Of a stretch of DNA of 64,000 nucleotides, positions 6,601 through 49,255 are shown one piece after another. The notes beneath the pieces are model-generated. The model searched no databases. It was given only the letters and a program-made list of their open reading frames with translations, and had not been told where the DNA came from. The stretch comes from Schmidtea polychroa (lineage: Eukaryota), in NCBI GenBank assembly GCA_044892525.1, contig CM097885.1, positions 127,968,001-128,032,000 of the forward strand. The letters are read 5' to 3'. The stretch's first letter is position 1; each line of letters opens with the position of its first letter. A program made the translations under genes and the position numbers.

Positions 6601-6795
6601 GACACTCGTGTTTTCGAGGTAGGAGAGGAGATACTCGTACGTAAAGAGCCGCAGAACAGGCACAAGGATGGTATGCAATACGATGGCCCATATAAAATCG
6701 CCAGATTTCTATCACCTCATCGAGTCGAACTACATTCACAAGAAGGAACGAAAGAAAGAAGAATCGAGTGGCTGAAGAAGTGGGAAAAGTCTTAA
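3608..6795 (+). pseudogene. pol: Pol polyprotein (protease, RT, RNase H, integrase) with one frameshift
   Basis: Frame open from 3608. Motifs: protease LWDSGAS, RT YLDD, RNase H ILDTDVS/ELLAV/TDHKAL/NADGLSR, integrase H-H-C-C plus FIDVAY, ILTDRG and NGLAERAI. An apparent extra A in the A8 run at 6062-6069 splits the integrase. Confidence 0.95.
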
Positions 6796-11687: not shown

Positions 11688-12094
11688 CAGTGCTTTTTTT
11701 TCTGACGGAACACTCCTAAACGGCGTTCCGGCACCTTTTTTTGCTGAATGATTTAAAAAAATTGACATGTTTTGGTTTTGTGTCATATTTCTATTTCTGA
11801 CATTTCAAAAAGTCAATTACAATCAAATTAAAAGTAATAGTCGTACGCCAAAGCGAGTGAATCATAACTTCGTGCTTCCTATGTGTTATTACTATTATAT
11901 AAAACACGCTCACACTAAATATACGCCATTAATATACTACGTCATTAAAATCGCTTCCTGTCATCGGCGTTGTAAATTCACATTGTAAAATAATCAATAT
12001 ATTTAAAATTTCTAAAAATTCAGCGTCATTTTTTTGCATATAAAGGATAGCACAGATACGTTCCGGCACCTTTTTCCCCAGGAAAAAAGCACTG
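11688..12094. mobile_element. hAT MITE
   Basis: TIR CAGTGCTTTTTT and a perfect 8-bp TSD AATCTTAT. Internal direct repeat CGTTCCGGCACCTTTTT. Confidence 0.88.
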
Positions 12095-14268: not shown

Positions 14269-14676
14269 TAAATGTTGCCTATTTCGCTGAAAAAACATAC
14301 CAGAGTACAACCCAAGGTAACCAAATAGCATCATTAGCGGTTGATGGTCGTTACAAAGACGGAAAACATACTTGTTCCGAAACCCAGAATGATCATAATC
14401 AGTGGTGGGAAATTGAACTCACTGATCGGTTTTTTATTACTGCAATAGTGATTGTTAGCAAATTTACAAGAGAAACGAACTATAATCATATCAAAATAGA
14501 AATCCGAAATAAAAATGTTCCATATATATTTTCAGAATTTTGCGTTGCAAAGGTTTTATGGATCAGTACCGATGATCCACGAATTTTCAAATGCAACAAA
14601 TGGGGTCAAGTAATACGGATTTTTGTTATCGACCCAATGCCCATGCCCCTTATTTTATGCGAAGTGGAAATTTACA
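14269..14676 (+). CDS. Exon: F-type lectin (FTP)-like domain 1
   Basis: Phase 1-1, 408 nt. NVAYFAEKTYQSTT..ASLAVDG..TCSET..QWWEIEL..FC..FKC..GQVIRI..LILCEVEIY. Confidence 0.9.
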
Positions 14677-17600: not shown

Positions 17601-20600
17601 TTCCTTAACGTCTCTAACACCTTGATGAATCTATTTCTTTCACCGACAAAAGCACCATCTTTAATGTTAAAGCTTCTTTTACGAAGTACTTAAAACTGCA
17701 ACTGAACATGCTCAGTTATCTTAACTAGGCTTCAGGGCTTCTTAAATTAGCAATAAAGAAATTATGTGAATAAAGGGTAAATAATTTACACCAATTCATA
17801 GATTAGCCATATGCAACAATCTTTTAGCTATTTTGACCATCTTCTGCACACATTTCATAGAATCGAAAGATAGATTTTTCACTCCCCAACTCTGAAAGTG
17901 AAATCTCACTTAAAACGCAATTTCCGAAAAGTTTGTATCAAACTAATTTCTAAACGAACATTGGCCTTAAGACATGGCACTAAGAGACAAAGCGACAAAC
18001 AAATAATAATATATCTTCGTATTCCTTTAACACTCTCAGTGCCACAGAAAAAACAGGCCTTTTTAATATCTTATTGTCAACCACATTGACCTGACAAGTT
18101 TATTTAAAGAAAAGTCTCTGTCAGACAAATCTCTGCCGACAAAAATCTGAAACAGGCTGTGGATCTAAGAGAAAATTTCAAATATTTAAAAAGCACTGTC
18201 AGTCAAAAATGACTGACATGGCACCGAGAGTGTTAATTAAATAACACTATCCTTAATACTTCAATAGTCTATTATTAATATGTTACAATAAATTTTAATA
18301 CTTACTTTTCCACAGCTTTATCAACTACTGAAGAATGCTACAATTATGAATACATAAAAATGGACTATCAAGGTTCATTACAATACAGTAAAGCATATTC
18401 AAAAAAGTGTTCTCCATGGAAAAACTTTATCAAATCTAATTATGAACACGAACAAATAATTTTTTTCCCTGAGGGTATGCTAAATAAGGAACAATTTCAG
18501 TGGAGTATTAGTGGAATATATCACACTTACATCGACACTCTTTCAAATTTATTACAAAACTATTGCCGGTTCATTCGACTTTATGCCTATAACTTCAGTC
18601 CTCGAAGTCCCGTTTGTCCGGATGAACATATGAAATTAATGCCATGTGAAAGTCCACCGAAATGTAGTGGTAAGAATTGTTTTTCTTTAAATCGACTATA
18701 AAATTAAATAAAAATAAATAATTTTCAGACAAAATTAAACTCAACACTTGCATGTTTAATTCGAAGGGAGAAAAATATCGTGGAAATGTCAATATCACAA
18801 TCACCGGTAAATTCTGCATTCCGTGGTCAAAATTTGAGGTTATTTAAATTAAATTTTATTTTTCAATAATTATTAAAAAATTTAAATTTTTTTTATGATT
18901 TCAAACTATAAAAGTTTTCACTATAATTTCCTCTTGAAAAATATTTTCAATTTCATAAATATTCATAAATAAATTATTTTATTGATCATAGAAATGTCAA
19001 ACTTTAAAGAAAATTTTAGAAGGACTGAAAAAAAATTAAAAATGCATATATATCTTTATTCATGTATTTACATTAAAACACTGCTTTCCAACCTTTCTGT
19101 ACCTACGCCCGGTTTTATATAAAAAAATGTGGCGCCCGTTTAGTTTTTGTAACAATCTATTTCCTCAAATATTTATCCGGTATTTAAATTAATTTAATGG
19201 GCTACAAAATAATATACTTTAATAAAAAATATACATCAAACATATTTATTTTTTATAAGTAATAACAATTTTAATTGTGTTGAGGATACCTAAAAAACAA
19301 TTTATAAATAAATAAATAAAACTACCTGGGGGAATATCGCAATGACAAACTGAACGATCTGTGGGAACTCAGAAAAGAAAGCGGAAGCAAAAAGAAATGA
19401 GATATGAGGAAGAGGAAAGAAACAAAAGAAATCAAACATGAAAATAAAAACCAAGGTCAGTACTAATTAATTAGTACAAAAAGGAAAAGGAATTTCGAAA
19501 TCGGGAAAACAGAAAAACAACAATATTCTTAACTCAACAGCTTGTCAGATAAGAAAAACAAAACAAATACAGGCCGGAGCCGCAAAAGGAAAAATTTATA
19601 AATATTGCGACAGTTGTCAAAGATAACTCTGTCACAGGGAAAACTGGAATATCATGTTGGAAAAAAGGGTGGAATTGAAGATAAACTGAAGTGCCACAAA
19701 TTGACGAGGTATAAAATGAGGGGGCATAGCAGAAGCAGAGAGAGAAACTATAGAGAGAACGATTTAAAGAATCAAAAAGACGTGGGATAATTGTATTAGC
19801 GAACAATTTGGAGAAGCCATTGAGAGAACAAATTAGAAGAAATATTTGAATAAAATTGAAACAGAGAAACTAAAAAGAAAACAGAATTAAAGAGAATCAG
19901 GAAGAGTTTATTCAGTTGATAATAGAATAAAGTTAGGCGAGTAAAACCAAGTCAAAATCAGAGAACAACCAGTTAAAATTACCAATTATTACACTCCTCG
20001 GTTGTGAAAGATTTGTCAAATCAAAGTTATACGAGTGTGCTATTCCTCACCATAGTGTTGTAATAAGCACGGTATAATAGTTAGCTTGTTTAGTCAATTG
20101 TATCAGTGTGAAAATATTTGTGATATTCAATAAAGTTTCCAGTGTTAATTGTTATTTGTGGGTCAGTCAAAGACACGCTTGGAGTCAGAGTAAGAATTCT
20201 AATTTTATCAGCAACTCTATAACCCAACAATTGTAATTAAAACAAATTATACATAAATACAAAAATCGAATACATAATTGTCACAATTAATTATGAATAA
20301 GCGTATTATAATGTGATGGTTGAACTTGTTTTTCAGCACAAATTTTCTCAAACCGTATTATCATTGAAGATATGATGTTCTCAGGTCTTTCTCAATCACT
20401 AAACGAGATCAATACGTTGTCTTTAAAAAAGCCACTGCAGAAAACCCAGTTTCACACAAATAATAAGGAAAATCTTTCTTTACACGCAACTAAAACGTAA
20501 CTATCGAGACTATTTTCTTGTTAAAACAACTGCAAATATTTGAAAAGTCAAAATTTTCATATTTTTCAATTACCAACAAGTTTCATATCCATTCATATTT

Positions 20601-23600: not shown

Positions 23601-26600
23601 TAAATATTAAAAATTTTTGAGTTTCATTTAATCTCTATTCTCATTGGTTATATTTAATATTTAATTAATATCATATTCAAAATGCTAACTGCTGATCCTA
23701 TTTTTTCCTGGGTCAAAGGAGAAATTTGTTAATCTATGACACTTACGTCGTTTTATTCATTCTAAAAAATGAAAAATTTCCAATCACTTGTATATAAATA
23801 CTTTAAATTCACTTTACTTTTATTTGGAATAAGTATTTTCATTTTGTTAACACAGTGGTTAATTCCACAATTGACTTCGGCCAGTTTAATGTTTATATTT
23901 AAATTTTTCACATGTTCTTCAAATTTTCTAGAATGAAGCAATAACAAATTCCTTCCTATTATCATAGCATTATTTGATTTCTCACCGTTTTTTCTATATA
24001 CTATTCAAATTTGCTGAACAAAAAACGATAAAATGAGGTGGTTTTTTAAATATTTAATATCTTTCATAATTTTTAACATATTTTAATATAAATTGCACGC
24101 ACAAATATATTTTAATATATTGATTAAAACTAATAAAAATTTATAAGATATTTTTGCAAATAATCTCAAAGTTTGCACGATCATACGTGAGGCACGATGT
24201 TGTTCGCCGCGCTTTTGGCTCAAACAATAAAGAGCATCATCGAGCTTCTCAGCACTCTAATAGATAAAATCAGCACTTAAAACGAAAACAAATCTTGTAA
24301 AAAGATTAAAAGCCTTTATTTTTAAAATTATTTTTTAACATTGCAAAATTGACCAATTTCACCTGGATTTACTAGCATTTTTAGTTTTTTTATTGTTACT
24401 GAACGAACACAAAGTAAAGTAACACAAAAAATAATTTTATGTAAAAATTTATTAATAGAAAAAATTAGCATTTTAAAATCAACGTTGATTATTCTTTAAA
24501 ATTTATTTCTTTTCTAACTATCGATTAATATTTTGTTTTATATTCGTGTTATAATTCTTGTTAAATATAAAAAGAAAAATATTTAAAACAAATGAAAATA
24601 GATTAATTGTGAAAAATATAAAAGATTTTACTGATCAATTATTTCCGATATAAATACTATGAAAAGTTATTATTTAAATTAGAAATTATTTTATAAAGGT
24701 TTTGAATTTCTTTTCAGTAAACATGGCTCAATCAAATTTTGTATTTGAACTATCAGATACTGGGAATAAAGATGCTAAATTATTATGGGATGGTGAGGGA
24801 AAAACAATGTTTTCCAATGACTATGTTACATTAAAACCATTTCTCAATAAACCAGCATTTGTTTTAATTATATTTAAATATCCAATTCTTCTTATAGCGG
24901 TTGTTATTTATCCTTACTATAAAGAAGGTTTATCAAGGGTAAGCAATCTTGGAAGCTTCTTTAAACTAAAAATTCAAACTGGACATGCCATATCCGAGCT
25001 GGAACGAAATAACAGTATATGCAATGAACTACACAATGAAATTTACAAAAAAAAAATTTTCATGGACTGCCCAAGATTAACAAGTATTGTAAAAATTTCG
25101 GCTGCAAATCCTACAGATGAATTAGATATTGCGGAAATAAATCTGTTCTGTGAGTTTCTTATTGTTTTTATTATCATAATGTTAATAAATAATATTTTAT
25201 GAATATTCTTTGGTATTTACTTTTGAATTCGACATAAGTTTTAATAATTATTTTGGTAAAAAAAAGGAATAATGACTTTCTTTTTATTACTCTTTAATTC
25301 TTCTTATCCAACTTTACATAAGGTTTTATTCACATCAAATATTTTGTCTAGTGAATTCATATATTAAAGCTTTCAGTTTGTCATTTGAATCTTTAAATAA
25401 AATACGCTCATTTATCATTTCTATGCAAAATAAACGTTAATGCTAATATTATAATGTTATCAGTGCCCTCTCGAGGTCACTTAACCTCCTTGGCATAGAA
25501 GTAATCGAGCACCCTTTTTGTACTGTTTATCTTCTGATATATAAAAACACCATTGACTTTGATTTGCATATCTAGGAGATTAAGACACCATGTACAAACT
25601 GTTGTATAAGCGATTCAAGATAAAAATAAGGGCCATCTCCGTCATAAACAAATGAAAAGAATATTTTTATAAATGTCATTATGCGAACATAGGAATCGAA
25701 AAAATATTCATTATAAAATAATTTTCCTATACTTTTTACAACACAACACATTTTATTAAAATTTTTATTTTTTGTAACAAATTTTTTTCGAATATTCAGC
25801 GCAAAGCGAGTGTCCATAACTTTTTGGCCTCTTTGCAAATTCCAATTTCACCATAAGGTTTACAAATGAGATTTACTAAATATTAATAAAACCTGAATTT
25901 TAAATTATTTAAACAACAATTAATCAATATTAAAATGATAATAATTATTTAAATAGAACACCCATTTCCGAAGATTTTTCCAAAAAAATTCTTTTAATGT
26001 AGGTCAGATAAGTTGGACACTGGTTACAACGGCAACCTCTAAAGAAAAACAATTTAAGTTTAAAAATATAAGTTCAATGACATTTTTAGATCCACATTAA
26101 ATTGGTGATGTATAAAATTATATAGGTCATATCTAAAATTTAAGAAAGTCACATTAAAGTTAATTTACGGACAATGTCAAGTTAAGGTAAAAGTAATTTT
26201 AAGGTCNNNNNNNNNNNNNNNNNNNNNNNNNNNNNNNNNNNNNNNNNNNNNNNNNNNNNNNNNNNNNNNNNNNNNNNNNNNNNNNNNNNNNNNNNNNNNN
26301 NNNNNNNNNNNNNNNNNNNNNNNNNNNNNNNNNNNNATATGTAACCCATAACAGTCTTGTAATGAAATATATGGGTCATATTATGAACTAAAAGTGTATG
26401 TGAAAAAACTGAAAATTTATTTCACTTTTCATTATTCTTTCTCATTTTTAATACGAAACGTTCCATTGGTGTTTTCTGATGCAGTTACAAGCGATTTATT
26501 TCTAATGTGATGTATTGTAATCACAATTCAGTGAATTCATTTTTAACCAGAAAAAATTGACCCATGGTTTGTAATTCCCGGATGATTGACAACCTTAGGT

Positions 26601-29600
26601 GACAAGGAAGGAAGGCCTCCCAAGTAATCTATAAAGGAATGAAGGTAAATGAAATAGAAAGAAATAGTGGTGTAGATCAGTGCTTCTCAAACTTTCTGAT
26701 GTGGCGTACCGGCAGATGTTTTTTAGATCAGATGGTCGGGACATGGTTCTAAATGACAATCACGTTGATATCCTTGGAAACATGACTCTTTCACTTCTTG
26801 CTGATGACTTACATTCCATGTTACATCTTACTGCTCCACACGTGTGGATCAGGTCAGATGTGTGACATAGAGTAAAATATCAGTCAAATCTTTTAATAAA
26901 GTGCATACAATAACTGTTTCCAATTAAATTACTACCATGCTGTATTTTTATTAGATAAATAAACAAAAAATATCAGTCACATGACCCACCTGTTTCTCAT
27001 GGCATGTAATTTTACATTTGTTTATTTTCCTTTGAAAATCTCTTCGCGTACCGGCAGACTATTGCTTGCGTACCGGCACCGGTACGCGTACCACACTTTG
27101 AGTAGCACTGGTGTAGATGATACAATATAATAATAATCTAATGTCCGCAAGCAAAAAATGTTCAAAAGTAAATATTTATAATCAAACATCCAAGCTAAAT
27201 CATAGACAATATCATATTGAAATGTATTCCATTAGACGAAGTTTTTTTACTCAAGTAACCCATCTACATTAGACATTTTTAAAAATAGGCCTCTCAAATA
27301 CCAATTAAGAATTCTTTTATTTAATTAACAAGATGTTACCCTTCAAAAATGAAGGCGTAATTTTATTTATTAAGTAGTTGCCCCTGATAGTGTCTCTTTA
27401 AATAAAATAGTTTTTTTAATATTTATCTACTTATAATTAGAGTAGTATAAAAAATTATTTATCAATTTAATTTTTTAATAGCGTTATATCCAGACAGACA
27501 GATAACGAACGTTATTATATGTGATTTAATTAATATATCATAAATTTTAATTAATATAAAAAACTATTCTATCTGTAACAATAAAGTGATAATTTAAGGC
27601 TTTTGCTACGAATAATGTATTTAATCAAAAAATTTTCGACTATAAGATAGATTGACAAGGATTATCTTATAGTCGAAAAATTTTTCATTAAATACATTAT
27701 TCGCAGCAAAAGACTTAAATTATCACTTTATTGTTTTAAATAATAAATGCTGATACCAAGAAATCATCACTTTATATTCTATTTATAATTATACAATTAA
27801 TTTTAGCTAGGTATTCCCCTGCCGGATGCATTAATAGTAAGGATATCAGTGTCACAGGGAAAAATTATTTATGCTCCGACATTAGAAACTTAAATATTTG
27901 GAAAATTTCTGACAGTAGTAAAGTTCGATGTAGCTTATGGAAAATGCATCACCCTCATGTATTGGACAATGTCAATAAATATTGTAATATAATAAATTTG
28001 CAACGAACCTTTTATAATTATTCATGGCCGACTCAACAATGCGGGTTTGATGTATGCAGAAGTATGTCAAAAATATATGTATTTCGATATTTATTTGCTT
28101 AATTTATAACGAATTAAATTCAATTAATTTATTTCAATTGTTTAAATTTTATTTTGTCAATGTTGTAATTTATTGCAAATTTTAATAAATCTAATTTTTC
28201 AAGTATGATACTTTATAAAAAACTGAACTAAAATTTTTATAAAATTACATTAACTTTATTAACATAGAAAATGCGTATTCAATTTTCTCAATTTTTCCTA
28301 ACATTATTAATAAAGGAATTTGGTGCAGAACACTTGAAAACACCTAAAGAAAAATAATTAATGTGTACACCATTTTCAAATTCAATCTGCCTGATAAATG
28401 CACATATGCGTACTAGAGACATACAGTCAAAATCGCTAAATAAAAACGAAATAAATCGGTTTCATCTAAAAACATCCTGAAGAAAATCAGTACACAACTT
28501 TAAGTTACGAATTTCTGTATTTTCTATGCAACCACATAAAATGTCAGGTGAATATTATGTCCAAATTGTCTTCTTTGAGTAGATTCAATTGGGAAATGGT
28601 GTATTATACTATAACTTAATTTTCTTACATATAATGATTATGTCAATCATTAGAAAAGCCTAAATCAACTATTCTATTTAATCATAAAACCTTTTCTTGA
28701 TATTTCATTCAATATCTCTTTAATATTGAATGTTATTTTATACAAAACTATTTAATTTCTTCTATGTTTATGATTCTTTTTTTCTATTTTTTTCTATATG
28801 ATTTTAAAAACAAATTAATAATTTATAGTTTAAATGAATATATTTGGATATTCTTTATTAAAACATCCCAAATTCGCCAAGTATTTAAACATATTTAATT
28901 TCAAACTAGTCTTGACATTCTTTTGCATCAAATAATATACAGTTATTGTTTAAATCTTTTGATCAAAATGGATTGCAAATTCAGTTTTTTAATGCCTTTT
29001 ATACTTCATTACTCTAAAAGAGATCTGTTATTACTACTAATTAATGATGCTTCAAGGATTAGCACATGGTACGTTTTACAACAGATTAAAGTATACGTTT
29101 TCAAGGAAGCTAGATTCTATCTAGCAGGAAGACTCTGATTTTGATTATGATGTGCTAGTTATTTACCAAGTGAACAAGGATTTTAAGGATTCGCCTAAAT
29201 ACCGCAATTTTAGAAAATATTTATACAAGAATTTTATACTAAACCGCCTGTGAACATATTTGCCACAAAAGACACTTCGCCTCATCCAAAACATCAAATC
29301 AGCATTATCTCAGAATTTTTCTGTCAGATTTTTCATACCACAAGCAAGAAGAATATTATAGCTGATAAGCTTTCCCTCAATACCAATGCCACATTTTTTA
29401 AGTTAACCTGCCTTAACTTAGCTCACCATCAGAACCTCTGTAGTAGATAATAAAATTTTATAAACAACATTGTAACACTATTATTTAATTATTGAAAGTT
29501 GAAGAAGAAATTTAACCAAATATAAATGTCATTCAAGGGGAAAATATTTTGTTGAAAATATTTGAGCCAAGATTTATAGAGAATTTCTGAAAGGTTTTTG

Positions 29601-32600
29601 AAGAGAATTTGCCTAGATTCAAAATAAAAGAGTACCGATATCAGATATCCATCTCCAGTTGCCAGTCTAGTGTTTATATCGGCCATAAACTAATGAGGCA
29701 TTCTATTGAAATTGTTGGTGTTGCAACCCCTTCCAACTTTAGATGTATTCATTTGAAAGTTGATTATATATTTCGTTGTGATAATAAAAAATAATTTTTA
29801 CCGATTAAAAGTTTTGATTGATACCAAAGAATTCATGTTGATAGAAATAAATAATTATATTTAAATCAAATACTACATTTATATACTACATTATTATATA
29901 CTTAAAAATACCGAAAATATTTAAGACATAAATTTTATTTAGATAAATTAAATTATATATGCAAAATATCGAAATTTGGAATAGAATACCGTGGCAATCA
30001 TTCGGTAACACGATCGGGATATCCTTGTGATAAATGGAAAAATCACAAAAATTATATTAAAAACCACCTGTGGTTAATTTATGAAGAAAATTATTGCAGA
30101 AATCCGACTAATGACCCAAATGGACCTTGGTGCTTTTTAAATCACCCAAAAAAAAATATATCGCACTGTAAAGTTCCGGAATGCAGTAAGTTTTGAAAAA
30201 TTTAATTATAATTGGTATAAGTCTCTATTGCTATATTTTTGCTAACATATAAAATTATATCTATANNNNNNNNNNNNNNNNNNNNNNNNNNNNNNNNNNN
30301 NNNNNNNNNNNNNNNNNNNNNNNNNNNNNNNNNNNNNNNNNNNNNNNNNNNNNNNNNNNNNNNNNNNNNNNNNNNNNNNNNNNNNNNNNNNNNNNNNNNN
30401 NNNNNNNNNNNNNNNNNNNNNNNNNNNNNNNNNNNNNNNNNNNNNNNNNNNNNNNNNNNNNNNNTAAGTAAGCGAAATCTGTAAATAACAAAAATCACGA
30501 GTGATATCCATAAACCTTATTTATTTGATATATATATATATATATAGCCAATTTTTATTGTGGAAACCATTATGAGAAAAGCAGCATTTACTATAGCATT
30601 CAAAAAGGAAGTCATTGAATACAACGAATAAGGAAACTCTTATTACAAGGTTAGAAAATTCTTTAGTGAGCGAGATAAATGCGGTTATAAACAATTTATA
30701 TAGTATTCAAAAACAGACCTCTCTGATGATGAGAGTAGTTAGCGGTGGGAGAAAGACATCGCTTGATTCTCTTGAGGAGATTCTGGCGAATGAAATAATT
30801 GAGCTGAGATTAATGAAAGCAAAAATTATAAGAACCTTCATATCTAATCGTGATTTTTCCTTGACTGAGCAGAATAATATTGTTTCTAAAGCAACAGCCA
30901 ATTGGATCTCGGGTTTTATGGCAAGAAATGGCAAGAAATAGACTTAGAAAAACTACGAATTTCACAACCCTGTCTAATATCTCAAACCATCAACTACATG
31001 CGTTATCTTCAACATGTGCTCAAAGACAATCGAACTAAGACGGTTGATTTAAGGGACCGCAAGCATGTCATCATGAAGTCGACAGGATTTGCTTCTTTGA
31101 GAATAACTGTGATAATATCAGTTTGAGCAATTGATAGAATGGTAGTCCCTCTGATAATACACAAGGTCAAATATTCACAAAATATTATGAAAAATAGAAA
31201 TGTTTTTAATGTGAAACAAAGCAAGGCCTGGGTTAATCAAGAACTGATGATCTTATGGATTGATTTGAAGTTTCCTCTGTTTGATGTTAGTTCTGTTAGA
31301 TATATCGTTTGAAATTCATGCCGACCCATTTCACTGAAAGGATAAAAGAACATTGCCGAATGAGAGATATAAAGTTGGTTGTGATATCTGGTGATCTGAC
31401 ACCGTATCTGCAAGCATATATTAAAATTTAGAAAGAATTTAAAGATAAAATTTGTCATTCAATCAATATTTGGAAGATCTCTGGGATTATATATAGTTCA
31501 CAAGAACAGGTAATCAAAAACATCCAAGTCATCAAACTGTTAACCTTTGGTCGATGAGGCCTGGAGTAGTCTTTTTGCTGAAAATATACTCAATTCAATT
31601 AGTTCGGCAGGATTTTCGACTAATTTTGAAGACATGCATATTTCAAAGCATGATGTTAATGGGGAAATATTTGGTGTCAACTTTCTTAGTTTAAATCATG
31701 AACAGTTAATGGTTAATCAAGATAATGGTGTGGTCGAACCCGATATTATAGATCTAGCCGACAAATTAAATTTTTGTCTATTATTTTTTTGAAACCACCA
31801 AATAGTATGAACCAAAAATTATTTTTTTATGGTCATACAATTTATTAATATAACTTATACTATTTAGCAATATCCACTTTTTATTATACACTTTTTATTA
31901 GATTTAATAATTTTTATATTTTATATTCTTTTTCTGAATTTTTAAAAATTTTATTTAAAATTAAAATAAATATCATAGAATTATAGAAGCTAATGATAGA
32001 AGCTTTAAAAATTTAAAAATTTTAGTTGGTTTTATTTTGAATTTTAAATGATATTTATTTTAATTTGAAATAAAATTTTTAAAAATTCAGAAAAAGAAAG
32101 TATATCATTATATTATATTTATAACCAATGAGAAGTAAGAAAAAGGAAATAAAAGAAAGATAGAAATGTATGTGCGGGAAGAAGATTGCTATATTCCAGG
32201 AGATTAACAAAGACTATCTTATAGTCGAAATTATTTTCATTTAATACATTATTCGTAGCAAAAGGTTTAAATTATCACTTTATTGTATTATTATTATTAT
32301 TATTATAATTATTTGTCAAAATATAGTTCTAACTTTAAATTATTAAAAATATAAAGGTTTAATTTTTAAAAAAACTTTCAGTTAATATTGCACCATTTGG
32401 AGTTGTTTCCATGAGCTCTACAAAGAGTGCAAACAATATATTTTGTTTAGAAGAAGAAACTGGTAAAGATTATAAAGGATTTTTGAATTATACTATTAAT
32501 GGATATTGTAAAATATGGTCAAAACAAAATTTCATAATAAATTTAAATGACAATCATAACTATTGTAGAAATTATGGAAATCGTAAACGTCCTTGGTGTT

Positions 32601-35600
32601 TTGTTTATAATCTTCAATTCGATTGGGCGTATTGCGATATTCCTTTATGCAGTATGGAAATATTTATCCTTTGAGCTTAGTTAAAAAGATAATTTGTAGG
32701 TAACTTTTCTCAAGGCGATATCTTTGGTCCGTCGAGATCTATTGATTACATTTTACAAAGAAATCTGGAATCATGTGCGGTTTCTAAAGAGCATACCGAA
32801 AACGATACTGCATATATCACATGGAAGTGGTTAATTGGAGATGTTGCTAGGATTGTTGGGGTTCGAATTTATCCCCAAGAACAATATCTGGAGGATAATA
32901 AAGGACTAAGTATACTTTTATACAACAGTGGATTTCGTGAGACAGTTATTTGTAAAATGCAAAATCTGCCAAGTTCAATGCCTTTTACCGACTATCCGTG
33001 TATTTACAAAGCTAATAAATTAATGGCCGCCTTAAAAACTGGACAGAATAAATATAAAAATTCAACAACCTTAGCCATTTGTCAAATAGAAATTTATAGT
33101 AATTTAAATTGTTTATAACAGTGATTAGTTAATTTTTTAAACCTAACTACCTTTTTTAAAAGGAAATACGCAAAAAATATGTATAAAGACGATTTTGATG
33201 ACATTATAATAGGAAACTTTTAATTATATAATTTAAAAAAATTTTTAAAATTATATTCAAATTTAAAAATGAAATTTTTAACTTTTATTATACATTTTTG
33301 TCAATACAATTCGTAATACAAAATTTATTCAATGCGCTTTGAAGATAAAAAAATTTCATGGTTGAATTTCTCCAACGGAAATGCTAAAAAAATCAATAGT
33401 AAAAATCAACAAAAATGTTGACAACAAAATATTTATTCTATAATAAAGTAATCATAACACTCAAACATTAAGTATGACCATATTTTAAATAATTTTTCAA
33501 AATATTTTTCTACTCCTTTTTTCTCTGTTATTTTTGAGAATATTATTAATTGTTGCAGTCATAGAACGAAAAATTAATCTTATTAAAAATCGAATAAAAA
33601 ATTATATATAAATCTATAAAAAAAAACTTTGCAAGTTTTGAATGACAAAAAAGCACGAGTCAATCTAGAAAGCATAAAAAGCAAGAAATCGATAATTAAT
33701 TATTAATCATAATTAATTTTTGAAAAATCGGCCTGGGAGGGGCATGATAGAAATGGTTTTGTTACAAAATGCACCGTAGGGCACGAAACACACAAAAATT
33801 TCTAAATATTATTTAATTTCCATGAAAATCTTTTTATAATTTTATAAATATGATTGTTTTATCTGTTGAATAAAAATGTTTATTTATTTTCATTTTAAAA
33901 ATTTGGCTTCTAAATTTTAAACCTTTTAAAATTTATAATCCGTTTTTAGTATGGCTATCCTGAAGTGCTAAAATTTAACTTTGTGTCAAAGCCGAGATTT
34001 TTAAAATTTCAAAAGGATAATAATGAGCTATTTATTAATTATATTATTATAAAATTTATAAAATTTCTTTAACTTCTCCACAAATTCTCATTTTACTGTT
34101 TCGATAAGGCCCTTGTCTTTTATTGAAGAGGAAATTCGGTGCAGTCTTAGTTTCTATAAATTTTATTCAAAATCCAATATTTCGAATAATTGCTGGAATA
34201 ATTTTATTATTAACCATTTGATGTACAATTTTATTTTTAATTTTTGATCAAAAAGTAATCGAATATTCTTAAAGTGAAAAATGTACGTACTGTAGAATCA
34301 TTTAGTCTCTATTGCATCAAGAACAAGCAAGTAAAATTTGGCGAGTAAATATAGTGGTTGGCCGTTTCTCATCCGAGGATGTCAAAATTACTAGTAAACA
34401 GTGCTTGTGTCGGACAAGGCACGTACGTTAACCCTTTCAATACGATTTTTTTATTTTAATAATTCATGTAATATTTATAGCACACGTGTCTACTGTTTGT
34501 TAGCAACATCTAGACTGACAAAATTTTATAGAAAGAAATAAAGCAGACAGCAAACAGCAACAAAGCAGACAGGTTTGGACTTGTTTACGAGTCTATGACC
34601 GTACAGTGCTAAAATAGACTATAAAATTCTCTGGGACAATATGTCCCTACAGTATTGAAAGGGTTAAGTGGTAAAATCCAACATAATTACTCTAAATAAT
34701 TTTAAACACTTGACAAATGATAAATAAGATAATTTATCTCTAATTAAATTTTCATTCAAATCATTATAAACGCATTTCATACTATTAAATTATTCCAATA
34801 TTACCTATAAATTTTCAATAATTATTCTTAGAAATGCCATTATCAAGGGAGCTCATGCGTAAGGCGAAGGATAGTCCCTTGTCCATGTCCTCGGATTAAA
34901 AAACTTAAAATTAAAAACACTTAATTTCTGAATTGTGGTCTGTATATAACTAAATTTTTAAAAAAAAATTTAAAAAATAAAAAAGAGGTTAGGAAAATAA
35001 TAACAAAATATTTTATTTTTAAAAAACGATATATTTTACAATTATTCTTTGGAAAAACTATTCTTGATATGGTTTTGGAGTGGGGCGGCATTTTATTTTC
35101 ACTGTGAAGTAAATTTAATTGTTGCCGATACATTTGATTTTTTATTTTTAATGTTTACTTATTTTTTATAGTAATTTTTGAATATACAAATTAATTTATT
35201 TCTCCCAGCCTGGTATGTTTATTTTTATAAAAATTTTTTTTAGTCATAATATTTTACAATTAAAATTTTAGTATTTAAAATGCATAGAAAAAACCTATAT
35301 AATGTTATTTTCATGCAGAATATAAAGCAAGACACATAATATTTTATTTCAATTTATTTTTATTATATGAAAATATGAATTATTACAATGATTTTACTTT
35401 ATTGTAATTTAATAATCTTCAGTAAATATTTTTCTCTGGCTATTTTTAATACCGTTTTACAATTATTTATCGTGATTTTGATAATGAGCTATTTCTTTAT
35501 CCACCAATTATGTCTTTCTTTTTAATTAATAGCAAAAAATCTTTTTATCATTTATAATAGATATTCGCAAATTCTTTAAAAAGTCGCGGTCAGAGGAATC

Positions 35601-38600
35601 AAAATGATTAACCCTTTCCTTTCTGAATTAAGAGTTGAAGAAAAAATAATCAAAAACGTGTTTTTTATGTACATATAGGGTACCAAAAATGGTTTTTATG
35701 ATTTTTTTGCCATACAAAAAATTTCAAAGCTGGGGGAATTCTCATGTACTGCAGTGGTAATTCCTTTTCAAAATGGTTCATATCGTCTTTGTCATCCGAA
35801 AATTCTATTTCAGAAAGGGATTAAATGATTTTACATTAAAAGTATAGATCTTCTTTATCGATCATAAATTAAAATATTATATCTACCAGTCCATAGATGT
35901 CTATACATGTATGAAATATATCATGATGCCATATGTTATCATTAGCCAGGAAAGGGTTAAGTTCTTCTATAATTATTTCTGAAGAATCAAAAACAATCGG
36001 CAGATAACATTAATATGAATCAGTCTTTGAAGATGGGGTGAATACTTCCACTATTTTTTATATATAACATTTCTTGGAAACTGATATTGTTTCACCAAGG
36101 AAAACTCGATACAAGGCTTTCACACAGCCGTATGATTTTAAGAATGGCTCTCTTGGGTCGCGTACTTTTCGTCATCAATAGGTATTATCAATAGCTATAA
36201 GACTTGTAGACGAAAATATTACTTAGGATGTGTTTCGCTAGAAAGTATGGGCACAAAACCAATTTCAACATATATTTTCATCATTGAGAAATTTTGGCTT
36301 GGATATGACTAAAAATTTAGATCCAAGGTATGATGGATGTTCTGCGATAACAAGGAAAATAAATGGTGTACAAAAGCTCATTCAGAAACAATATTCTTTG
36401 ACAAACTTCTTTCATTGCGCTTTGCATAGACTTAACTTTTTTGTAAATGATTTAAATAATGTTCAAGAAGTATAGAACATAGTAATTTTTTGCGTACAAT
36501 AAAAAATTGTTAAAATTTTTCAAGACAATTTTCATCCGATCTTACAATGACTAATACACTTGTTGGCAAGGTGCTTTTCGATTATATCACGTATGCTCTT
36601 CATATTATGGTGCATATTATGGTACAATACTCAGCTTTACTCTAATCCAGTGATTCTCAACCTTTTATACTGGTGACCCCATTGATATTTTTTTACGACT
36701 TCACGAACCAAATTTCTTTAAGGAAAATATAAAATACCAGAAGGATTGGAAACAATTTTTCACAAATATATATATTTTTATAAATATGGCGACCCCGAGG
36801 TTGAGAACCAGTGCTCTAATCTGTTGTGTAAAACATATTATCTGTTAAAAAGATTAACACGGTAAAGATAACTTTTCAAGATCACCACGGAAATGCCGAA
36901 AAACATTTTCATTGTGTCTTTCAAGTTGTTAAAAAAAGTTCAAATAAATTTCATTATCACATTTGTTTTTTTTCAAACCTAATGTCAACCTTTTTATGAA
37001 ACTTTTAATTATAATTTGATTTAAATAATTTTTAGTCACAGGAGAAACGAGAGATTGTTTTAATTTCTTAAAAGGCATTGATTTTATGGGATTACGTTCC
37101 ATTACTATTTCGGGAAAAATTTGCACGAAATGGAAAATGCACAAAATATCTCAATCATTTCAATTTCCTGAAGGCCCTGGCTCAGATCCAGATATATTGA
37201 ATATAGTTCATAATTATTGCAGAAATCCGGTTTTGAATAACACTGTTACTGGTACTTCACCATACTGTTTTACAGGTGACAATGAGGCTACAGAACCATG
37301 CGATATTAGTCTTTGCACGAGTAAGCATTTAGTTGATATTTGTATACTGCTTTATTTATTATTTATATAAATTTAAAGGTAATGGAAAGGTTGCGTACAC
37401 CAAATACTGTAAAGGATACTATACCTATCTATCCAGGGACGTAACCAGGATTTCAGCTAGGGGGGGCAAAATTATTAATTATTGCAATTCATCGAGCAAT
37501 GTTAAAAGTTGATACAGAAAAATAGAAAAAATATTTTAAAATAATTATCAAATTTATTATTAATTATTTACAATGTATATCACATAGAATATATTACAAT
37601 ATAATATTAATTCGTCCTTGTCCCTTTATTAATTCAAAAAGTTTAACCTTTTTTTATCCATGGTATTTCTAACACCAGTTAATGTATCAAATACGGAGAA
37701 GAGGAGGTAGTTTACGCACGTAGGCGAGCACAACAATACATGTAACCGGGTCGGTTAAACCGGCACCTGTCTATTTACTTTGTTGTGCCGAAAAGAGCAT
37801 AGTTGTACTGTCTTAGATTTGAAAAGACTTAACTAAAAATATACATTGTTTTTTTTAATTTCATACAATTCTCATAAAAAAACCAAAATAAAGGTTTTAT
37901 TAAAATATTTTATCCCAATTTATATTTGATAATCTATAATTTATTTAGGGGGAGTGGGGGTAAAACAAGTAAGCAACAATTTAGAGACCCCAGTATTTTT
38001 CACACTGCCAACTATATGTGACTTTATCATGATCAAGAGTATATATTGATTCGAATCCACATCAAGGAAGATTATTGAATGACTAGAGACGATTCTCAAG
38101 CAAAGTAGTTTTTTAAGAAGCCCTTCATTAAATTTGCATAATATTAGCGGAAATTGAATTTTCAATAAATATTTCATGTATATTAAATTAAAGTATTTGT
38201 TATTTTTCAACGGACGCTTTAATAAAATTAGTAAAATTAGTAAAAATATATTAAAGGCTACAAAGTAAAATAAACAAAACAAGATTAATAACATATACTC
38301 AGAAAACACTCAGCTCAGAACACAGAACATGTTTCATATATTGTAAATTAGGTACTCTTTTCAAATATCTTAATTTATCTTCTGTTTTAATCTCTTTTAT
38401 TAACTCTTAAGCTGTTGCATTTGCTATTGTCAATCGGTGACAAGCTATATCCCATTGCAGTTCAACGAAAAGATTTCACATATTTGGATGTCTACAATGA
38501 TATAAAAAGTTAAATGTGTTAAGAAATCCTTTAGATAATTATTATCTAAAGGATTTCTTAACACATTTATTATAAGCCTCTTAATTTCCGGCCATCACAA

Positions 38601-41600: not shown

Positions 41601-42979
41601 TAAAAATTTTTTTAATCATGTATTTTTTATTATGTACTTATCGTTGTATATTACTTTGAAACGATTTATGCTATTGTATTTTATCATAGTTATGTAAACA
41701 TATTAATAAACTGAATCTTACTCCTGTCCAAGAATACCCTGGATATTTAATCCCACGTTCTAACAGGGTTGGTGAAGCGAAACGAACAGGGGCGGAGCCC
41801 CTAGTTTTATTAAAACTTTTAATTATATATTAATTAATAAATAATGTATAATAAATAAGTGTCATTATCTAATTGATAGGGTTGTTTTCGATTTTGAATA
41901 AAATCGGTTTTAGGAAAATATAATAAGCAAGGGTGGGAACAATATTTTCCGTTTCTGTTTCGAACATAAATAAGCGGCAATTTTATCGTTTCCAGTCATT
42001 GATCTAAATTGTTCATTATTTGTTTCGAATTAAGAATTAACCACAATTTCTAATAAATCTAAAAAATATTTAATAAATTTTCATTATGACTACAGATAAA
42101 ATTTCTGATACATATGAAAATAAAATTGATCTATAGTCGCAATGAAAATAAATTAAATGTGTAAAAACACCAAAAACATGGCAAGTGTGAACAAAAAAAA
42201 TCAAATTTTATTTATGATGACATTTCATAAAATTTTAAATTGTTTTAGATGATGAATTTTCAGTATCAATAAAACAACCATCAAATGCCAGATTAAATAA
42301 GTCTTTTGCGTTAATTTGTGTAGCAAATCTGGTTGGATATTATCCCATTGTTATGGTATGGATGACAGGGGTTAATGAACCGATCCAAGAAAACCAAATT
42401 TTCCAAATAACACAAATAAATAGCACAACAACTGAATTAAATATTCAATCATTGACGCAGTCTATGACGACAATAATTTGTCAAGCAACCTATGGTTCTC
42501 ATTTTGCGTCTGCGAAGTTTTCCTATAGCGTTTTGCGTTAGTAGTTTTAATATTGTCTTTATGAAAATGTTAGGTTTTATCATCAATTAGCTGAATGTCG
42601 GTCATGCTGGAATGAAATCAAGAAATTCTGTTCAATAATTTGCGGAATGTTCGATCCTCCTATCAATCAGCCATTGTATAAAAATTGCAAAATGACTTGT
42701 GTTTTAGAAACGGTCAATGTTACTGTTCAATGCGTTGAAAGTCATGGACAATTGTCATGGAAGCCTGTCGACATTTGTACATATGTGCCAATGATAACAG
42801 ATAATATGGCCTTTAAAGAAAACACTATAATAATTCCCAGTAATACTGAATCCTTGAAAGAAAAATATTTGGAATTTCCTGATTATTTAATCATTTATTT
42901 TATTCTTATGTTTTTATTTATTCTTGGTGTGGTCATGTGCTCAATGTATTCCGAATCATTGAGGTTATTGCTGAGATAA
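14269..42979 (+). CDS. Multi-exon gene: kringle / F-type lectin-like / Ig mosaic type I membrane protein (5' end missing)
   Basis: Twelve open exons with canonical splice sites and mutually compatible phases: 14269-14676, 18316-18669, 18729-18838, 22529-22664, 24718-25149, 27807-28061, 29943-30185, 32382-32651, 32700-33098, 37036-37320, 42249-42536, 42591-42979. About 1188 aa with no internal stop. Joining all exons into one transcript is inferred. Confidence 0.8.
14765..15068. mobile_element. MULE/Foldback-like MITE with TIRs built from 14-bp tandem repeats
   Basis: Left arm of (TGGTTCACGACAAN)n at 14765-14873 and inverted arm at 14987-15068. Flanks AATTTTTAG / AATCTTTAG look like a 9-bp TSD with one mismatch. 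Confidence 0.75.
16980..17560 (+). pseudogene. Possible very degenerate retrotransposon gag-like fragment
   Basis: Stop-ridden frame FDFLLFDEAATLRQNFE..TYKSTKE*..QDENELLLFIKK is only loosely capsid-like. Confidence 0.25.
18031..18232. mobile_element. piggyBac-type MITE
   Basis: TTAA flanks on both sides. 14-bp TIR CACTCTC(A/G)GTGCCA and subterminal hairpin TGTCAGTC..GACTGACA. Confidence 0.8.
18316..18669 (+). CDS. Exon: kringle 1 (divergent, long insertion)
   Basis: Phase 1-1, 354 nt. ECY..DYQG..KCSPW..NYCR..PVC..PCE..PKC (six Cys). Confidence 0.85.
18729..18838 (+). CDS. Exon: kringle 2, N-terminal half
   Basis: Follows a 59-bp intron; phase 1-0. TCMFNSKGEKYRGNVNITITGKFCIPW. Confidence 0.9.
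19278..20229 (+). mobile_element. Solo LTR (related to family A)
   Basis: Termini TGTTGAGG...AACCCAACA, 4-bp TSD ATTG, TATAAAA and AATAAA motifs, and the shared 3' motif ACACG..GGAGTCAGAG. Confidence 0.85.
20750..21730 (+). mobile_element. Degenerate 3' part of an RLE-type (R2/R4/NeSL/Utopia-like) non-LTR retrotransposon
   Basis: Broken frames give IEAYNIFCHSKFVFIL, VIYAPKEKGSLCI (GGLG-like motif), KCRNC..RTNKHNEVQ and KPNIV (PD-like nuclease motif). Confidence 0.55.
22529..22664 (+). CDS. Exon: kringle 2, C-terminal half
   Basis: Phase 0-1. NYCRNPNSDISGPWCFV..EFCNVPEC. Confidence 0.93.
24718..25149 (+). CDS. Exon: divergent FTP/discoidin-like domain 2
   Basis: Phase 1-1, 432 nt. NMAQ..AKLLWDG..T..IAVVIY..KIQTG..NSIC..DC..IVKIS..LDIAEINLF. 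Confidence 0.75.
26207..26336. other. Assembly gap
   Basis: Run of N inside an intron of the receptor gene. Confidence 1.
26678..27110. mobile_element. hAT (Buster/Charlie-like) MITE
   Basis: TIR CAGTGCT(T/A)CTCAAA and a perfect 8-bp TSD GTGTAGAT. Confidence 0.9.
27577..27776. repeat. Foldback-type palindromic element, copy 2
   Basis: 73-bp inverted arms at 27577-27649 and 27663-27735 (about 4 mismatches) with a 13-nt loop. Confidence 0.85.
27807..28061 (+). CDS. Exon: atypical kringle 3
   Basis: Phase 1-1, 255 nt. GCI..GKNYLC..RCSLWKMHHPH..NKYC..RTFY..QQCGFDVC. Confidence 0.75.
29943..30185 (+). CDS. Exon: canonical kringle 4
   Basis: Phase 1-1, 243 nt. IC..GIEYRGNHSVTRSGYPCDKW..NYCRNPTNDPNGPWCF..HCKVPEC. 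Confidence 0.95.
30266..30464. other. Assembly gap
   Basis: Run of N. Confidence 1.
30572..31790 (+). pseudogene. Degenerate pogo/Tigger (CENP-B-like, DDE_1) transposase
   Basis: FTIAFKKEVIEY, LEEILANEIIELR..ATANWISGFMAR, STGFASLRITVI, AWVNQELMILW, ISGDLTPYLQA, VDEAWSSL..ILNSISSAGF across several frames. Confidence 0.8.
31926..32098. repeat. AT-rich inverted repeat (MITE-like)
   Basis: 51-bp arms at 31926-31976 and 32048-32098 with one mismatch. No TSD seen. Confidence 0.7.
32201..32286. repeat. Foldback element, copy 3 (loop plus one arm only)
   Basis: About 92% complementary to the 27577-27650 arm. Confidence 0.8.
32382..32651 (+). CDS. Exon: first strand of FTP-like domain 3 plus kringle 5
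   Basis: Phase 1-1, 270 nt. NIAPFGVVSMSST, then FC..GKDYKG..YCKIW..HNYCRN..RPWCF..AYCDIPLC. Confidence 0.92.
32700..33098 (+). CDS. Exon: remainder of FTP-like domain 3
   Basis: Follows a 48-bp intron; phase 1-1, 399 nt open. PSRSID..ESCAVS..TWKWLIG..IVGVRIY..VIC..YPC..LAICQIEIY. Confidence 0.85.
33275..33390. repeat. Dispersed repeat of about 115 bp (second copy at 40647-40762)
   Basis: Shared core ACTTTTATTATACATTTTTGT..ATACAATTCGTAATACAAAATTTATTCA..GCGCTTTGAAGATAAAAAAAT. Confidence 0.75.
34432..34663. mobile_element. piggyBac MITE
   Basis: TTAA flanks and a 12-bp TIR CCCTTTCAATAC. Confidence 0.88.
35612..35956. mobile_element. piggyBac MITE
   Basis: TTAA flanks and TIR CCCTTTCCT. Confidence 0.8.
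36190..36560 (+). pseudogene. hAT (ZMYM1-like) transposase fragment
   Basis: YDGCSAITRKINGVQKLIQKQY..FFHCALHRLNFFV matches the hAT YDGA..NGVQ..HC..H.LNL pattern. Confidence 0.8.
36648..36813. mobile_element. hAT MITE
   Basis: TIRs CAGTGATTCTCAACC / GGTTGAGAACCAGTG and a perfect 8-bp TSD CTCTAATC. Confidence 0.88.
37036..37320 (+). CDS. Exon: kringle 6
   Basis: Phase 1-1, 285 nt. DCF..GIDFMG..ISGKICTKW..HNYCRNP..SPYCF..EPCDISLC. Confidence 0.92.
38511..38569. repeat. 59-bp palindrome
   Basis: Perfect 29-bp arms around a single T at 38540. Confidence 0.9.
38700..39160 (-). pseudogene. MULE (FLYWCH-type) transposase fragment
   Basis: RRKNGIITWRCKQ..HGH (FLYWCH-like) and MFGDRTFDKVRNIFHQLQTCH (DGTF..QLYTIH-like). 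Confidence 0.6.
39391..39513. mobile_element. hAT MITE (123 bp)
   Basis: TIR TAG(A/G)GTTGCCACA and a perfect 8-bp TSD TCCATCAC. Confidence 0.9.
40230..40350 (-). pseudogene. mariner transposase HTH fragment
   Basis: RTVHKQFKRFISGDYSL*NQKHSRRPSTCNED resembles the mariner F.RF..GD.SL.D..RSGRP motif. Confidence 0.45.
41478..41804 (+). mobile_element. Non-autonomous Helitron
   Basis: A|TCTCTCTATATAAAAAAAGCT start; 3' hairpin AGGGGC-GGA-GCCCCT running into CTAG|T. Confidence 0.72.
42249..42536 (+). CDS. Exon: Ig-like domain
   Basis: Phase 1-1, 288 nt. FALICVA..MVWMT..TELNIQSL..IICQATY (C-W-C pattern of an Ig fold). Confidence 0.85.
42591..42979 (+). CDS. Terminal exon: 8-Cys module, transmembrane helix, short tail, stop
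   Basis: Follows a 54-bp intron. ECRSCW..FC..IC..NCKMTC..QC..W..IC, then YLIIYFILMFLFILGVVMCSMY and SESLRLLLR*. Confidence 0.85.
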
Positions 42980-43211: not shown

Positions 43212-44440
43212 TTATAATATATTTTTGAAAATGGTAAGATTTATTAATTTGTTCTTTAAATACAATTTTGTGTCAGTGAACATTCTGGAAAACAAAAGAA
43301 ACTCATCAGCAAATGTCTCTTCTAGATCTGATGAATGTATCTTAATTAATTCGTTTGCTTTAGAAACTATTTCATTACTTGACAAAGATCTGTCAAGAAG
43401 AAAACTGAACCTGTAATGTATTCCTGCGTAAGCTGCTCGCCGTTTTTCCATCTCAATGATAAGTCTGACCATGATCACATAGAAGGACTGTATACGGAAA
43501 TTGTCACTAGCACTCAGATTTAAACTTATATCAATATGATTCCCATCCATCACGACGTCGTGAAATCTTGTTCGCACATGTTTGCGCTTTGTACATTATT
43601 TATAATTTGATTTTGTATGATCTTTTCCCATACTTTCAAAGCTTCGAATTTATTACGTGTTTGATTTCATCTTTCCAAATCACACACATTAGTGCAGTTT
43701 CATTGGTCTAAATTTTTTATTAACGATTTTGCTTCAGACAGCTGCTGGTGGTTGGCGTTCACTTTCAGCAATATCAAACTATGCTAGGCGAATCTCCAAA
43801 TAGTTTGCACAAAAGCTTTTGTAGAATTACTGCACGCTAACCATCTTGTTTCTGACAGACCTTTTAGAACAGAAGCGTTTGTTTTATCCTTAATTCGCTC
43901 TTTAAATTTTGACCATCTCTGTGTTGAGGCCGAAAAGAATGTATACACTGACTGAACAATACCAAAGTAGTTAACTTCTGCCAAACAATACTCCACCGCA
44001 GATGAACCAACCAAATTTAAGCTGTGAGCACTTTCTAAATTCTGTGAAGGGATATTTTCTGAATAATAGCCTATAACATGTGCATTTTCTTCCCAATCAA
44101 CTGGATCACTGACTCTGCATTTATTACTTTGATTCATCTTTAAATCTTCACTGCTTACTAGTCCTGGATCTGGATCATCAAATTGAATCTATATATCTTT
44201 AGGCTGGTTAATCTGTTCTGGGTGTACATAAGTAACATCTGTTTTACTTTGTTTGACACTTTCGTTAGCAATATTTCTGGTATCGAGACATTGGTCGTGA
44301 CAGTTGTGTCATTGTTGGGCTTATCATCCTTATTTATATATTTCAGTATAGAGCCCTTCATCTTTTTAATGCTTCTTCTTTCTCTTGCTTTTACTTTCGT
44401 TTTACAGATCCAGACTCGGGTTTTCGTTGGTATTCATCAG
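43212..44440 (-). pseudogene. Internally deleted hAT (ZMYM1-like) transposase
   Basis: SAHSLNLVG..YFGIVQSVYTFFSASTQRW..LKGLSETRW and FRIQSFYVI..EMEKR..RFSFL. The basic N-terminus (KMKGSILKY) lies close to the catalytic block. Confidence 0.82.
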
Positions 44441-47975: not shown

Positions 47976-49051
47976 CAATATATATATATATATCCTAATA
48001 AACATTGATAAAATATGAAAACCGTATCTTTTGATTTGACAATGTATTTTTTATTATTGTTTTTATTATAATCTAAAATATTAAAAAAATAACATTATTA
48101 TGTTTTTAGTTTTATTTTTATGAGATATTCAGTTTGAGTTTTACTTCGGGTTAAGGAATGTATTGGTGAAGATATGAACATCTATCCAATGTGGATACAT
48201 TTCTCTTGTTTTCTTTTATGTCAAATATGTACAACATATTGACTAACATTAATGTTATGTTGAAAATATTTTATATGAAAAAAAATGAAATTAGATTCGG
48301 CTATAATTATTAAAGCGTGATAAAAATCGTTTGATGCCAAAATAACAAAAAAAAACTTTTAAAATATAAATATTATTCAACATAAATTCAGAATTTGGTT
48401 TATTAAAAAGTGATTTATAGAGATTTCTTGATTTTGATTTGTTTAAAGATTCTCCAATAAACGAATTTTGTAAGAGCATCGTACTTTGAAATTTTAATAT
48501 TTTCACTTTGAAAAGAATATCAAATGCATTTTCAAGGAAACCAAATTCCGAATTTTATTCATCAAAATTAAAGAAAAGGTAGGATTATATTATTTTCTTT
48601 AATTAATGACATTAGTTATGAAATTGAGGTAAAAATGAAATATATTGTTTATCTACATTTCTTTTAAGCTATGGATCAACGTTTTATTTTTTTCGCAACA
48701 TCAATTTGTTTTCAAAGGTCTGAGAAAGCCTTTGTCGAAATTTCATGTTGAATAGGAAACAAAACATTATATAATATGAATTGAATAAAAATTCAAATAT
48801 TAAATAAATTAGATCAAAGGTAAAGAAGTTAAGAGACATTAATGATAAAAAAAAATAGTAAATTTTTTTTATTAATTTGGCTCAAATTATAATTTAACAA
48901 TTCATTGTCCGAATGTAAATTGATTATAAATAATTGAATTGTCTAAAAGTTTATTAATCCGCTTTTTTATACAGAAATCAAATCAATATGAGATGTAATT
49001 GGTTTTAGAAAAAGACAAAATTATGTAAAATTTTCTCTTATAAAGATTAAT

Positions 49052-49255
49052 NNNNNNNNNNNNNNNNNNNNNNNNNNNNNNNNNNNNNNNNNNNNNNNNN
49101 NNNNNNNNNNNNNNNNNNNNNNNNNNNNNNNNNNNNNNNNNNNNNNNNNNNNNNNNNNNNNNNNNNNNNNNNNNNNNNNNNNNNNNNNNNNNNNNNNNNN
49201 NNNNNNNNNNNNNNNNNNNNNNNNNNNNNNNNNNNNNNNNNNNNNNNNNNNNNNN
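49052..49255. other. Assembly gap
   Basis: Run of N. Confidence 1.

Follow-up and report, generated by a model that had tools for sequence, protein, structure and literature searches.

Extracellular mosaic proteins are the textbook products of end-to-end exon shuffling, and a shuffled module inside another one is rare. Can a complete kringle be housed within a lectin fold? This question is raised by a 64,000-nucleotide stretch of the Schmidtea polychroa genome (assembly GCA_044892525.1, contig CM097885.1, positions 127,968,001 to 128,032,000 of the forward strand), hereafter the window, in which all coordinates are counted from the first letter. The window consists of AT-rich animal DNA, its introns are of the GT-AG type, and its + strand carries a gene of phase 1-1 exons from about 14.2 to 43 kb. 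A preliminary description of two exons of this gene, 32382-32651 and 32700-33098, had placed a kringle in a loop of an F-type lectin domain (FTLD) by domain insertion. We found that the FTLD is indeed split at the gene level, with a kringle embedded in it, and we consider it rather probable that the two exons encode a single domain of F-type lectin fold with the complete kringle embedded, folding as one nested module.

Exon structure of the composite domain

The features that bear on this question are listed below; AAA is the eel agglutinin, CDR1 a loop of the F-type fold, and P0001 a database copy described further on.

14269-14676, + strand: FTLD1, an uninterrupted F-type lectin domain encoded by one phase 1-1 exon, with which the exon boundaries were compared
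29943-30185, + strand: preceding kringle exon (Pfam 1.1e-16; P0001 residues 1-81)
32382-32651, + strand: composite phase 1-1 exon with an FTLD N-terminal piece, a short linker and a complete kringle (AG at 32380-81, GT at 32652-53)
32384-32422, + strand: NIAPFGVVSMSST, the FTLD N-x-A...[Q/M]-S-S-T segment, which is the strand region before CDR1 (AAA residues ~10-22)
32423-32443, + strand: linker KSANNIF, 7 residues up to Cys1 (direct reading)
32444-32650, + strand: complete kringle from Cys1 to Cys6, 69 residues, with NYCRN...PWCF core (Pfam PF00051)
32652-32699, + strand: 48-bp GT-AG intron (AG at 32698-99) with in-frame stops, absent from P0001
32700-33098, + strand: FTLD body exon with the rest of CDR1 (SNFSQGDIFGPS) and the SIDY, EHT, ITWKW and LAICQIEIY segments (GT at 33099-100)

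The frame from 32384 reads NIAPFGVVSMSSTKSANNIF and then enters the six-Cys stretch. In the composite exon, as in FTLD1 (tag/TA AAT GTT GCA, with the slash at the exon boundary here and below) and the exon at 24718, the phase 1 start lies 2 nt ahead of the Asn codon. Bacterial FTLD loci were collected by the DNA pattern of WW-x-VDL...EVEV, a 13-column position-specific scoring matrix (PSSM) was made from their N-termini, and all 50,636 stop-free 13-mers in the six frames of the window were scanned with it. NIAPFGVVSMSST took rank 1 with 16.95 bits, followed by a runner-up of 8.43 bits, and the true FTLD1 N-terminus was in rank 3 with 8.27 bits. The exact tail probability of this score is 1.4e-7 per random 13-mer, or 0.007 expected per window. 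With another profile, which used QSS as its sole anchor and took no account of N, A and M, the segment was still in rank 1 (15.1 vs 6.9). The family-invariant positions N1, A3 and S12 are all kept, and 38 FTLD N-termini were all placed on this piece by MAFFT. The N-x-A...Q/M-S-S segment is present, but on the kringle exon, and the earlier reading of the exon start as the first strand of an FTLD is thus borne out by the scan.

The six-Cys kringle proposed in the same exon was also recovered in full. It scored 43.9 bits on Pfam PF00051 (cut-off 34.3, E = 3e-11) over residues 24-89 and profile positions 3-79 of 79; its Cys residues are located at positions 22, 43, 62, 73, 85 and 90 of the joined sequence, and all six are kept in P0001. 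ANNIFC is similar to the 5′ end of other kringle exons (KLNYIC), and the donor lies right after Cys6 plus 1 nt, as in the neighbouring kringle exon 29943-30185. Therefore, a whole kringle exon appears to be fused behind about 14 FTLD codons.

Positions 32558-32605 of the kringle read CRNYGNRKRPWCF. Lysine-binding kringles have CRNPD-x-D...PWC, and the acidic centre here (CRNYGNRKR) appears replaced by basic residues, so that canonical lysine binding would be unlikely.

The body exon reads (S)NFSQGDIFGPSRSIDY...SCAVSKEHT...ITWKWLIGD...LAICQIEIY, with SIDY at the cation-motif position, and it ends with ...EIY plus A/gt, identical to the end of the FTLD1 exon. Since exon starts and ends match FTLD1, the first exon supplies the 5′ end of an FTLD exon and the second its 3′ end. 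As had been noticed before, an N-x-A...Q/M-S-S segment is missing from the body exon itself. Its own start NFSQGDIFGPSRS was found only at PSSM rank 2169, and untrimmed FTLD profile alignments pick up the body only at its residue ~11, paired with profile column 20, leaving columns 1-9 without counterpart in the exon. The distance from exon start to the cation-motif Asp is 16 residues, vs 23-28 in FTLDs, and by structural alignment the body N-terminus is about 15 residues shorter than in solved FTLDs. The start of the exon (NFSQGDIF) was considered as the missing N-terminal segment, and it was rejected for its PSSM rank and for lying 8 or more residues too close to the cation-motif Asp.

A bacterial FTLD hidden Markov model (HMM) followed the same order when hmmsearch was run on the joined sequence: HMM positions 1-17 were aligned to residues 1-17 and positions 35-90 to residues 117-172, on either side of the kringle. 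The body alone scored 7.0 bits, and the FTLD1 body 39.8 bits. Removal of the kringle in silico, a check proposed in the preliminary description, raised the score from 7.0 to 10.2-11.9 bits, vs 6.6-9.0 bits for 20 shuffled controls. The gain is small, though in the right direction; in FTLD1 the N-terminal segment contributes about 10 bits.

FTLD1 is a clear FTLD member in the same gene, matching 3cqo (3.8e-10), 2j22 (3.9e-7) and 1k12 (0.0024) through phmmer against PDB, and Pfam PF22633 (4.3e-7). Exon 2, the body exon, aligned to it by BLASTP only over the C-terminal 37 residues (E = 0.007). Alignment-free language-model features of the body were at 0.95-0.96 to F5/8-C and NedA-like clusters, and the neighbours of the joined piece were fucolectin clusters at 0.86-0.88, which is taken as a lead only. 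The fucose motif is defined as H-x24-R-x-D-x4-R/K (PMC5712786) and is not kept in the body: R-x-D reads Q-E-Q, and the last basic residue N/K. The motif His is ambiguous: profile alignment gives H122 (EHT placed on THT), and V118 would take the position if Cys116 is AAA Cys50. The cation motif h-h-D-G-x was also not found intact, since the body reads S-I-D-Y-I, with Asp kept and Gly replaced. The body is therefore probably a very divergent relative of the FTLD fold, and not a demonstrable fucose lectin.

Both exon joins are shared by P0001, a UniParc entry of 309 amino acids from a 96%-identical copy, in which the kringle at 29.9 kb is followed by the composite exon and then the body exon, joined as in the window. 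Exon 29943-30185 is joined to exon 32382 via the codon A/TT (Ile), and this codon and A/GT (Ser) are P0001 residues 81 and 171. The in-frame stops in the 48-bp intron mean that it must be spliced out. The coordinates given earlier for the two exons and the intron between them proved exact, both by the AG and GT boundaries and by the junctions of P0001. All modules have open frames throughout, consistent phase 1-1 GT-AG boundaries and pyrimidine tracts.

Comparing the window with P0001, we found 5 residue differences in the 132 of the body (32702-33097) and 23 in the 149 of the two kringles (29945-30184 and 32444-32650; Fisher p = 0.0012), none of them at a kringle Cys. The better conservation of the body between two copies argues that it is under constraint and not in decay, and evolution seems to be faster on the kringle surfaces than in the lectin-fold body. 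The first 12 motif residues, NIAPFGVVSMSS, are identical in both.

The last six residues of P0001, NIVLID, are an out-of-frame reading from the AG near 37050-53, where the window reads K-IVLIS-stop. The acceptor at 37036, after a long T tract, keeps the next kringle in frame (I-TGETRDCFNF...). P0001 is probably an automated gene model, not a cDNA, and its model probably mis-splices and truncates the gene near 37052. No encoding contig is on record for it.

Structure models and the position of the break

Two AlphaFold runs were made with FTLDs as the alignment for the body and, to keep the test unbiased, with no homologue row over the N-terminal piece. This piece was disordered and undocked in both (pLDDT 29-37 in run 1 and 21-27 in run 2), so that the modelling of the joined exons, which the preliminary description had named as a check, gave a lectin-like body and left the N-terminal piece apart. 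The modelled body had pLDDT 50-82 and matched FTLDs best, with a TM score of 0.70 by Foldseek, a Z of up to 14.6 by VIA and a root-mean-square deviation of 2.0 Å over 116 residues. The VIA scores of FTLDs (2j1t, Z 14.6; 1k12, Z 12.7) were followed by those of CBM32 and F5/8-C structures (Z 11-12); FTLDs head both structure rankings. A MAFFT multiple alignment covering guest and host was not achieved: FTLD rows fell on the kringle and kringle rows on the FTLD.

The body model covers only residues 25-151 of AAA, with residue 93 on AAA 25 and Asp106 on Asp38. As the N-terminal piece corresponds to AAA ~10-22 and the body begins from AAA 25, the break falls in CDR1. Of the five loops that surround the fucose pocket, CDR1 protrudes furthest and is the one that tolerates indels, with its apex at Glu26/His27 in AAA (Vasta et al. 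2017, PMC5712786). The kringle had been proposed to sit near the ligand face, and its position agrees with that; the fucose motif is not kept, so this face need not be a sugar site.

The arrangement would then be as follows. NIAPFGVVSMSST would form the N-terminal FTLD strand segment, followed by the 7-residue linker, the kringle and the 12 residues SNFSQGDIFGPS, after which the FTLD would resume at ...SIDY and run to ...CQIEIY. The first and last Cys of a kringle are disulfide-bonded, so that both ends lie side by side; therefore, a kringle can sit on a loop without pulling the host apart. The N-terminal piece would return to the barrel beside the body and the C-terminal strand, and the kringle would project over the former sugar pocket. 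With R-x-D-x4-R/K lost, a role as fucose lectin is less likely for the composite than one as the head by which a multi-kringle, single-pass membrane protein binds proteins or polymers.

Its origin may lie in the joining of a phase 1-1 kringle exon to the 5′ portion of an FTLD exon, or in the loss of an intron that separated the two. The donor that belongs to the kringle would now feed the 48-bp intron into the remainder of the FTLD exon. DNA alignment of the three kringle exons with their downstream introns revealed neither a copy that could have been the source nor homology between introns. Of the domain insertion claimed earlier, the discontinuity in sequence and gene structure holds; joint folding is rather probable, and the origin may have been a single insertion or a two-step one.

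Weighing of the nested domain against other explanations

Several results weigh against one nested domain. AlphaFold left residues 1-40 and 1-98 at pLDDT 21-37, although this alone speaks neither for nor against complementation of the body by the N-terminal piece; the FTLD-like shape of the body is also partly built in, because the model used an FTLD alignment. The sequence signal of the body is weak, with hhalign against FTLDs giving E = 0.015-0.02 in the same register, and the body exon had no match to Pfam PF22633 or PF00754 and no PDB sequence match. P0001 ends out of frame and looks like an automated model. Searching exon 2 against 1.84 billion representatives returned only P0001 and three spurious bacterial repeat proteins, and word-index searches with FTLD1, P0001 81-303 and the junction-spanning piece gave nothing new; an uninterrupted version, for which the preliminary description had suggested looking in relatives, was not found in these databases, nor were further relatives or a cDNA. 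Finally, the N-terminal piece is more canonical than that of FTLD1 and the body far less so, which is odd with one shared history. Either the body evolved quickly after loss of the sugar site, or the pieces came from two different FTLD exons.

The latter leads to a rearrangement scar, which we consider unlikely, though it is the strongest of the alternatives. The 13 residues would be left from a different FTLD exon whose body was deleted on fusion with the kringle, and exon 2 would be a second FTLD exon that lost its 5′ end independently, its body being a truncated, tolerant barrel or a decaying one, with no complementation between them. The unequal divergence from consensus fits this history (16.95 vs 8.27 bits for the N-termini of composite and FTLD1, 7 vs 39.8 bits for the bodies), as do the undocked N-terminal piece and the other degenerate modules in the gene (24718-25149, 18316-18678 and 27807-28061), which have no Pfam matches. 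However, it requires two breaks at the same loop position, while the body has been conserved best between the two copies (5/132), and the 12 residues NIAPFGVVSMSS are unchanged with the family-invariant N, A, S and S all kept.

It is less likely again that the exons are not joined as read and the nested protein is never made, for instance because the symmetric 270-nt exon is skipped or because the locus is a pseudogene. Such a gene-model artefact or alternative splicing would be in keeping with the partial P0001 and its frame-shifted end near 37052, and with a gene riddled with transposon-bearing introns. The open frames and the consistent boundaries with pyrimidine tracts in all modules speak against it, as do the same two junctions in an independent database entry and the conservation of the Cys pattern and the body. 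Very improbable is the explanation that exon 2 encodes another galactose-binding-like domain of discoidin or CBM32 type, complete alone, and that the N-terminal resemblance is coincidence. The language-model features do place exon 2 alone nearest to generic F5/8 type C clusters, and CBM32 and F5/8-C structures match the model too (Z 11-12), but coincidence would have to account for a motif of P = 1.4e-7 at exactly the start of an FTLD exon. FTLDs also top both structure rankings, FTLD1 has the same C-terminal C-x-[IV]-E-[IV]-Y and the same exon end, and the body alone is about 15 residues short at its N-terminus vs solved FTLDs.

The nested FTLD thus remains the preferred reading, with the N-terminal piece and the body probably folding as one domain.

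Gene context, known systems and significance

The remaining features of the gene are as follows.

18316-18678, + strand: kringle-like exon, without Pfam match
24718-25149, + strand: FTLD-like exon, without Pfam match
27807-28061, + strand: kringle-like exon, without Pfam match
37036-37320, + strand: following kringle exon (Pfam 6.2e-11), with 37036 as most likely acceptor
42249-42536, + strand: weak Ig-like exon
up to ~42963, + strand: exon with a hydrophobic, transmembrane-like stretch

Exon 24718-25149 starts with x/TA AAT ATG GCA (N-M-A), in the same phase as the FTLD exons, and ends with ...IAEINLF. FTLD similarity was undetectable (HMM about 0 bits, hhalign E = 0.06, no Pfam match), and this exon may be a very degenerate FTLD. 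A candidate first exon at 11767-11833 has an ATG followed by MFWFCVIFLFLTFQKVNYNQIK and a phase-1 GT donor; by a hydrophobicity heuristic only, it resembles a signal peptide.

Intergenic and intronic space in the window is filled with transposons. Upstream of the gene we found the pol of a long terminal repeat retrotransposon (reverse transcriptase, RNase H and integrase; 3608-6792, + strand), broken between 6013 and 6076, and a fragment of a piggyBac-type DDE transposase (8566-9063, - strand). Other transposon-like open reading frames in the introns of the gene, e.g. 30597-31309 and 43215-44433 (- strand), had no Pfam match. The window contains 533 N in all, in runs at 26203-26340, 30264-30464 and 49051-49250; the second run is within the intron between the 29943-30185 kringle exon and the composite exon.

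The composite shares with known FTLDs (AAA, 1K12; striped bass FBP32, 3CQO; Streptococcus pneumoniae SpX and lectinolysin, 2J1R, 2J22 and 3LEK) the N-x-A...Q/M-S-S segment, the x-D cation position, a Trp where they have WW, and the C-terminal C-x-[IV]-E-[IV]-Y. In structure, they match its body best (Z 12.7-14.6, for a body model built on an FTLD alignment), and known FTLDs tolerate indels in CDR1 (PMC5712786). Unlike them, the composite is discontinuous, with about 77 foreign residues in CDR1, and it has PQEQ...DNK in place of R-x-D-x4-R/K and Tyr in place of the G of h-h-D-G-x. The kringle resembles the modules of plasminogen, HGF and the ROR family in its six Cys, its score above the Pfam cut-off, its phase 1-1 exon and its donor after Cys6 plus 1 nt. 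It differs in sharing an exon with 13 residues of another domain and in lying inside the loop of that domain, not end to end with it.

Nested modules are known from MMP-2 and MMP-9, with three FN2 repeats inside the catalytic domain, and from integrins, with the alpha I domain inside the beta-propeller. Like these, the composite would have a compact guest with adjacent termini in a surface loop of the host near the binding face; host and guest families are different, and here both are shuffled modules of a repeat-built ectodomain, whose joint folding we infer. By layout only, the gene from 14269 to 42963, in which some six kringle or kringle-like exons are accompanied by an Ig-like exon and a transmembrane segment, is similar to that of the flatworm anchor-cell adhesion protein Tmed-krg1 (ON323680), which is membrane-bound, has about 1,360 amino acids with six kringles in the ectodomain, and gave a non-adhesive phenotype on RNA interference (PMC9229212). 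No FTLD is reported in Tmed-krg1, and in the literature searched we found no paper coupling F-type lectins with kringles.

We tentatively suggest that the composite might be a loop-grafted recognition module, in which a kringle at the CDR1 apex of an F-type lectin barrel makes one composite binding head on a multi-kringle membrane protein, produced by fusing one shuffled exon into the coding body of another. The locus is a clean, datable example, as the two ends of the host exon can still be recognised, the guest has retained its donor, and the gene also contains a sister domain that is uninterrupted. If the two pieces form one fold, a whole disulfide-locked domain of 69 residues can be carried on CDR1 of the F-type fold, which would bear on the conversion of lectin folds to binders of ligands other than sugars and on the engineering of domain insertions at CDR1. 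If the module was grafted on the loop in this way, exon shuffling would have given a domain in a domain, and not beads on a string.

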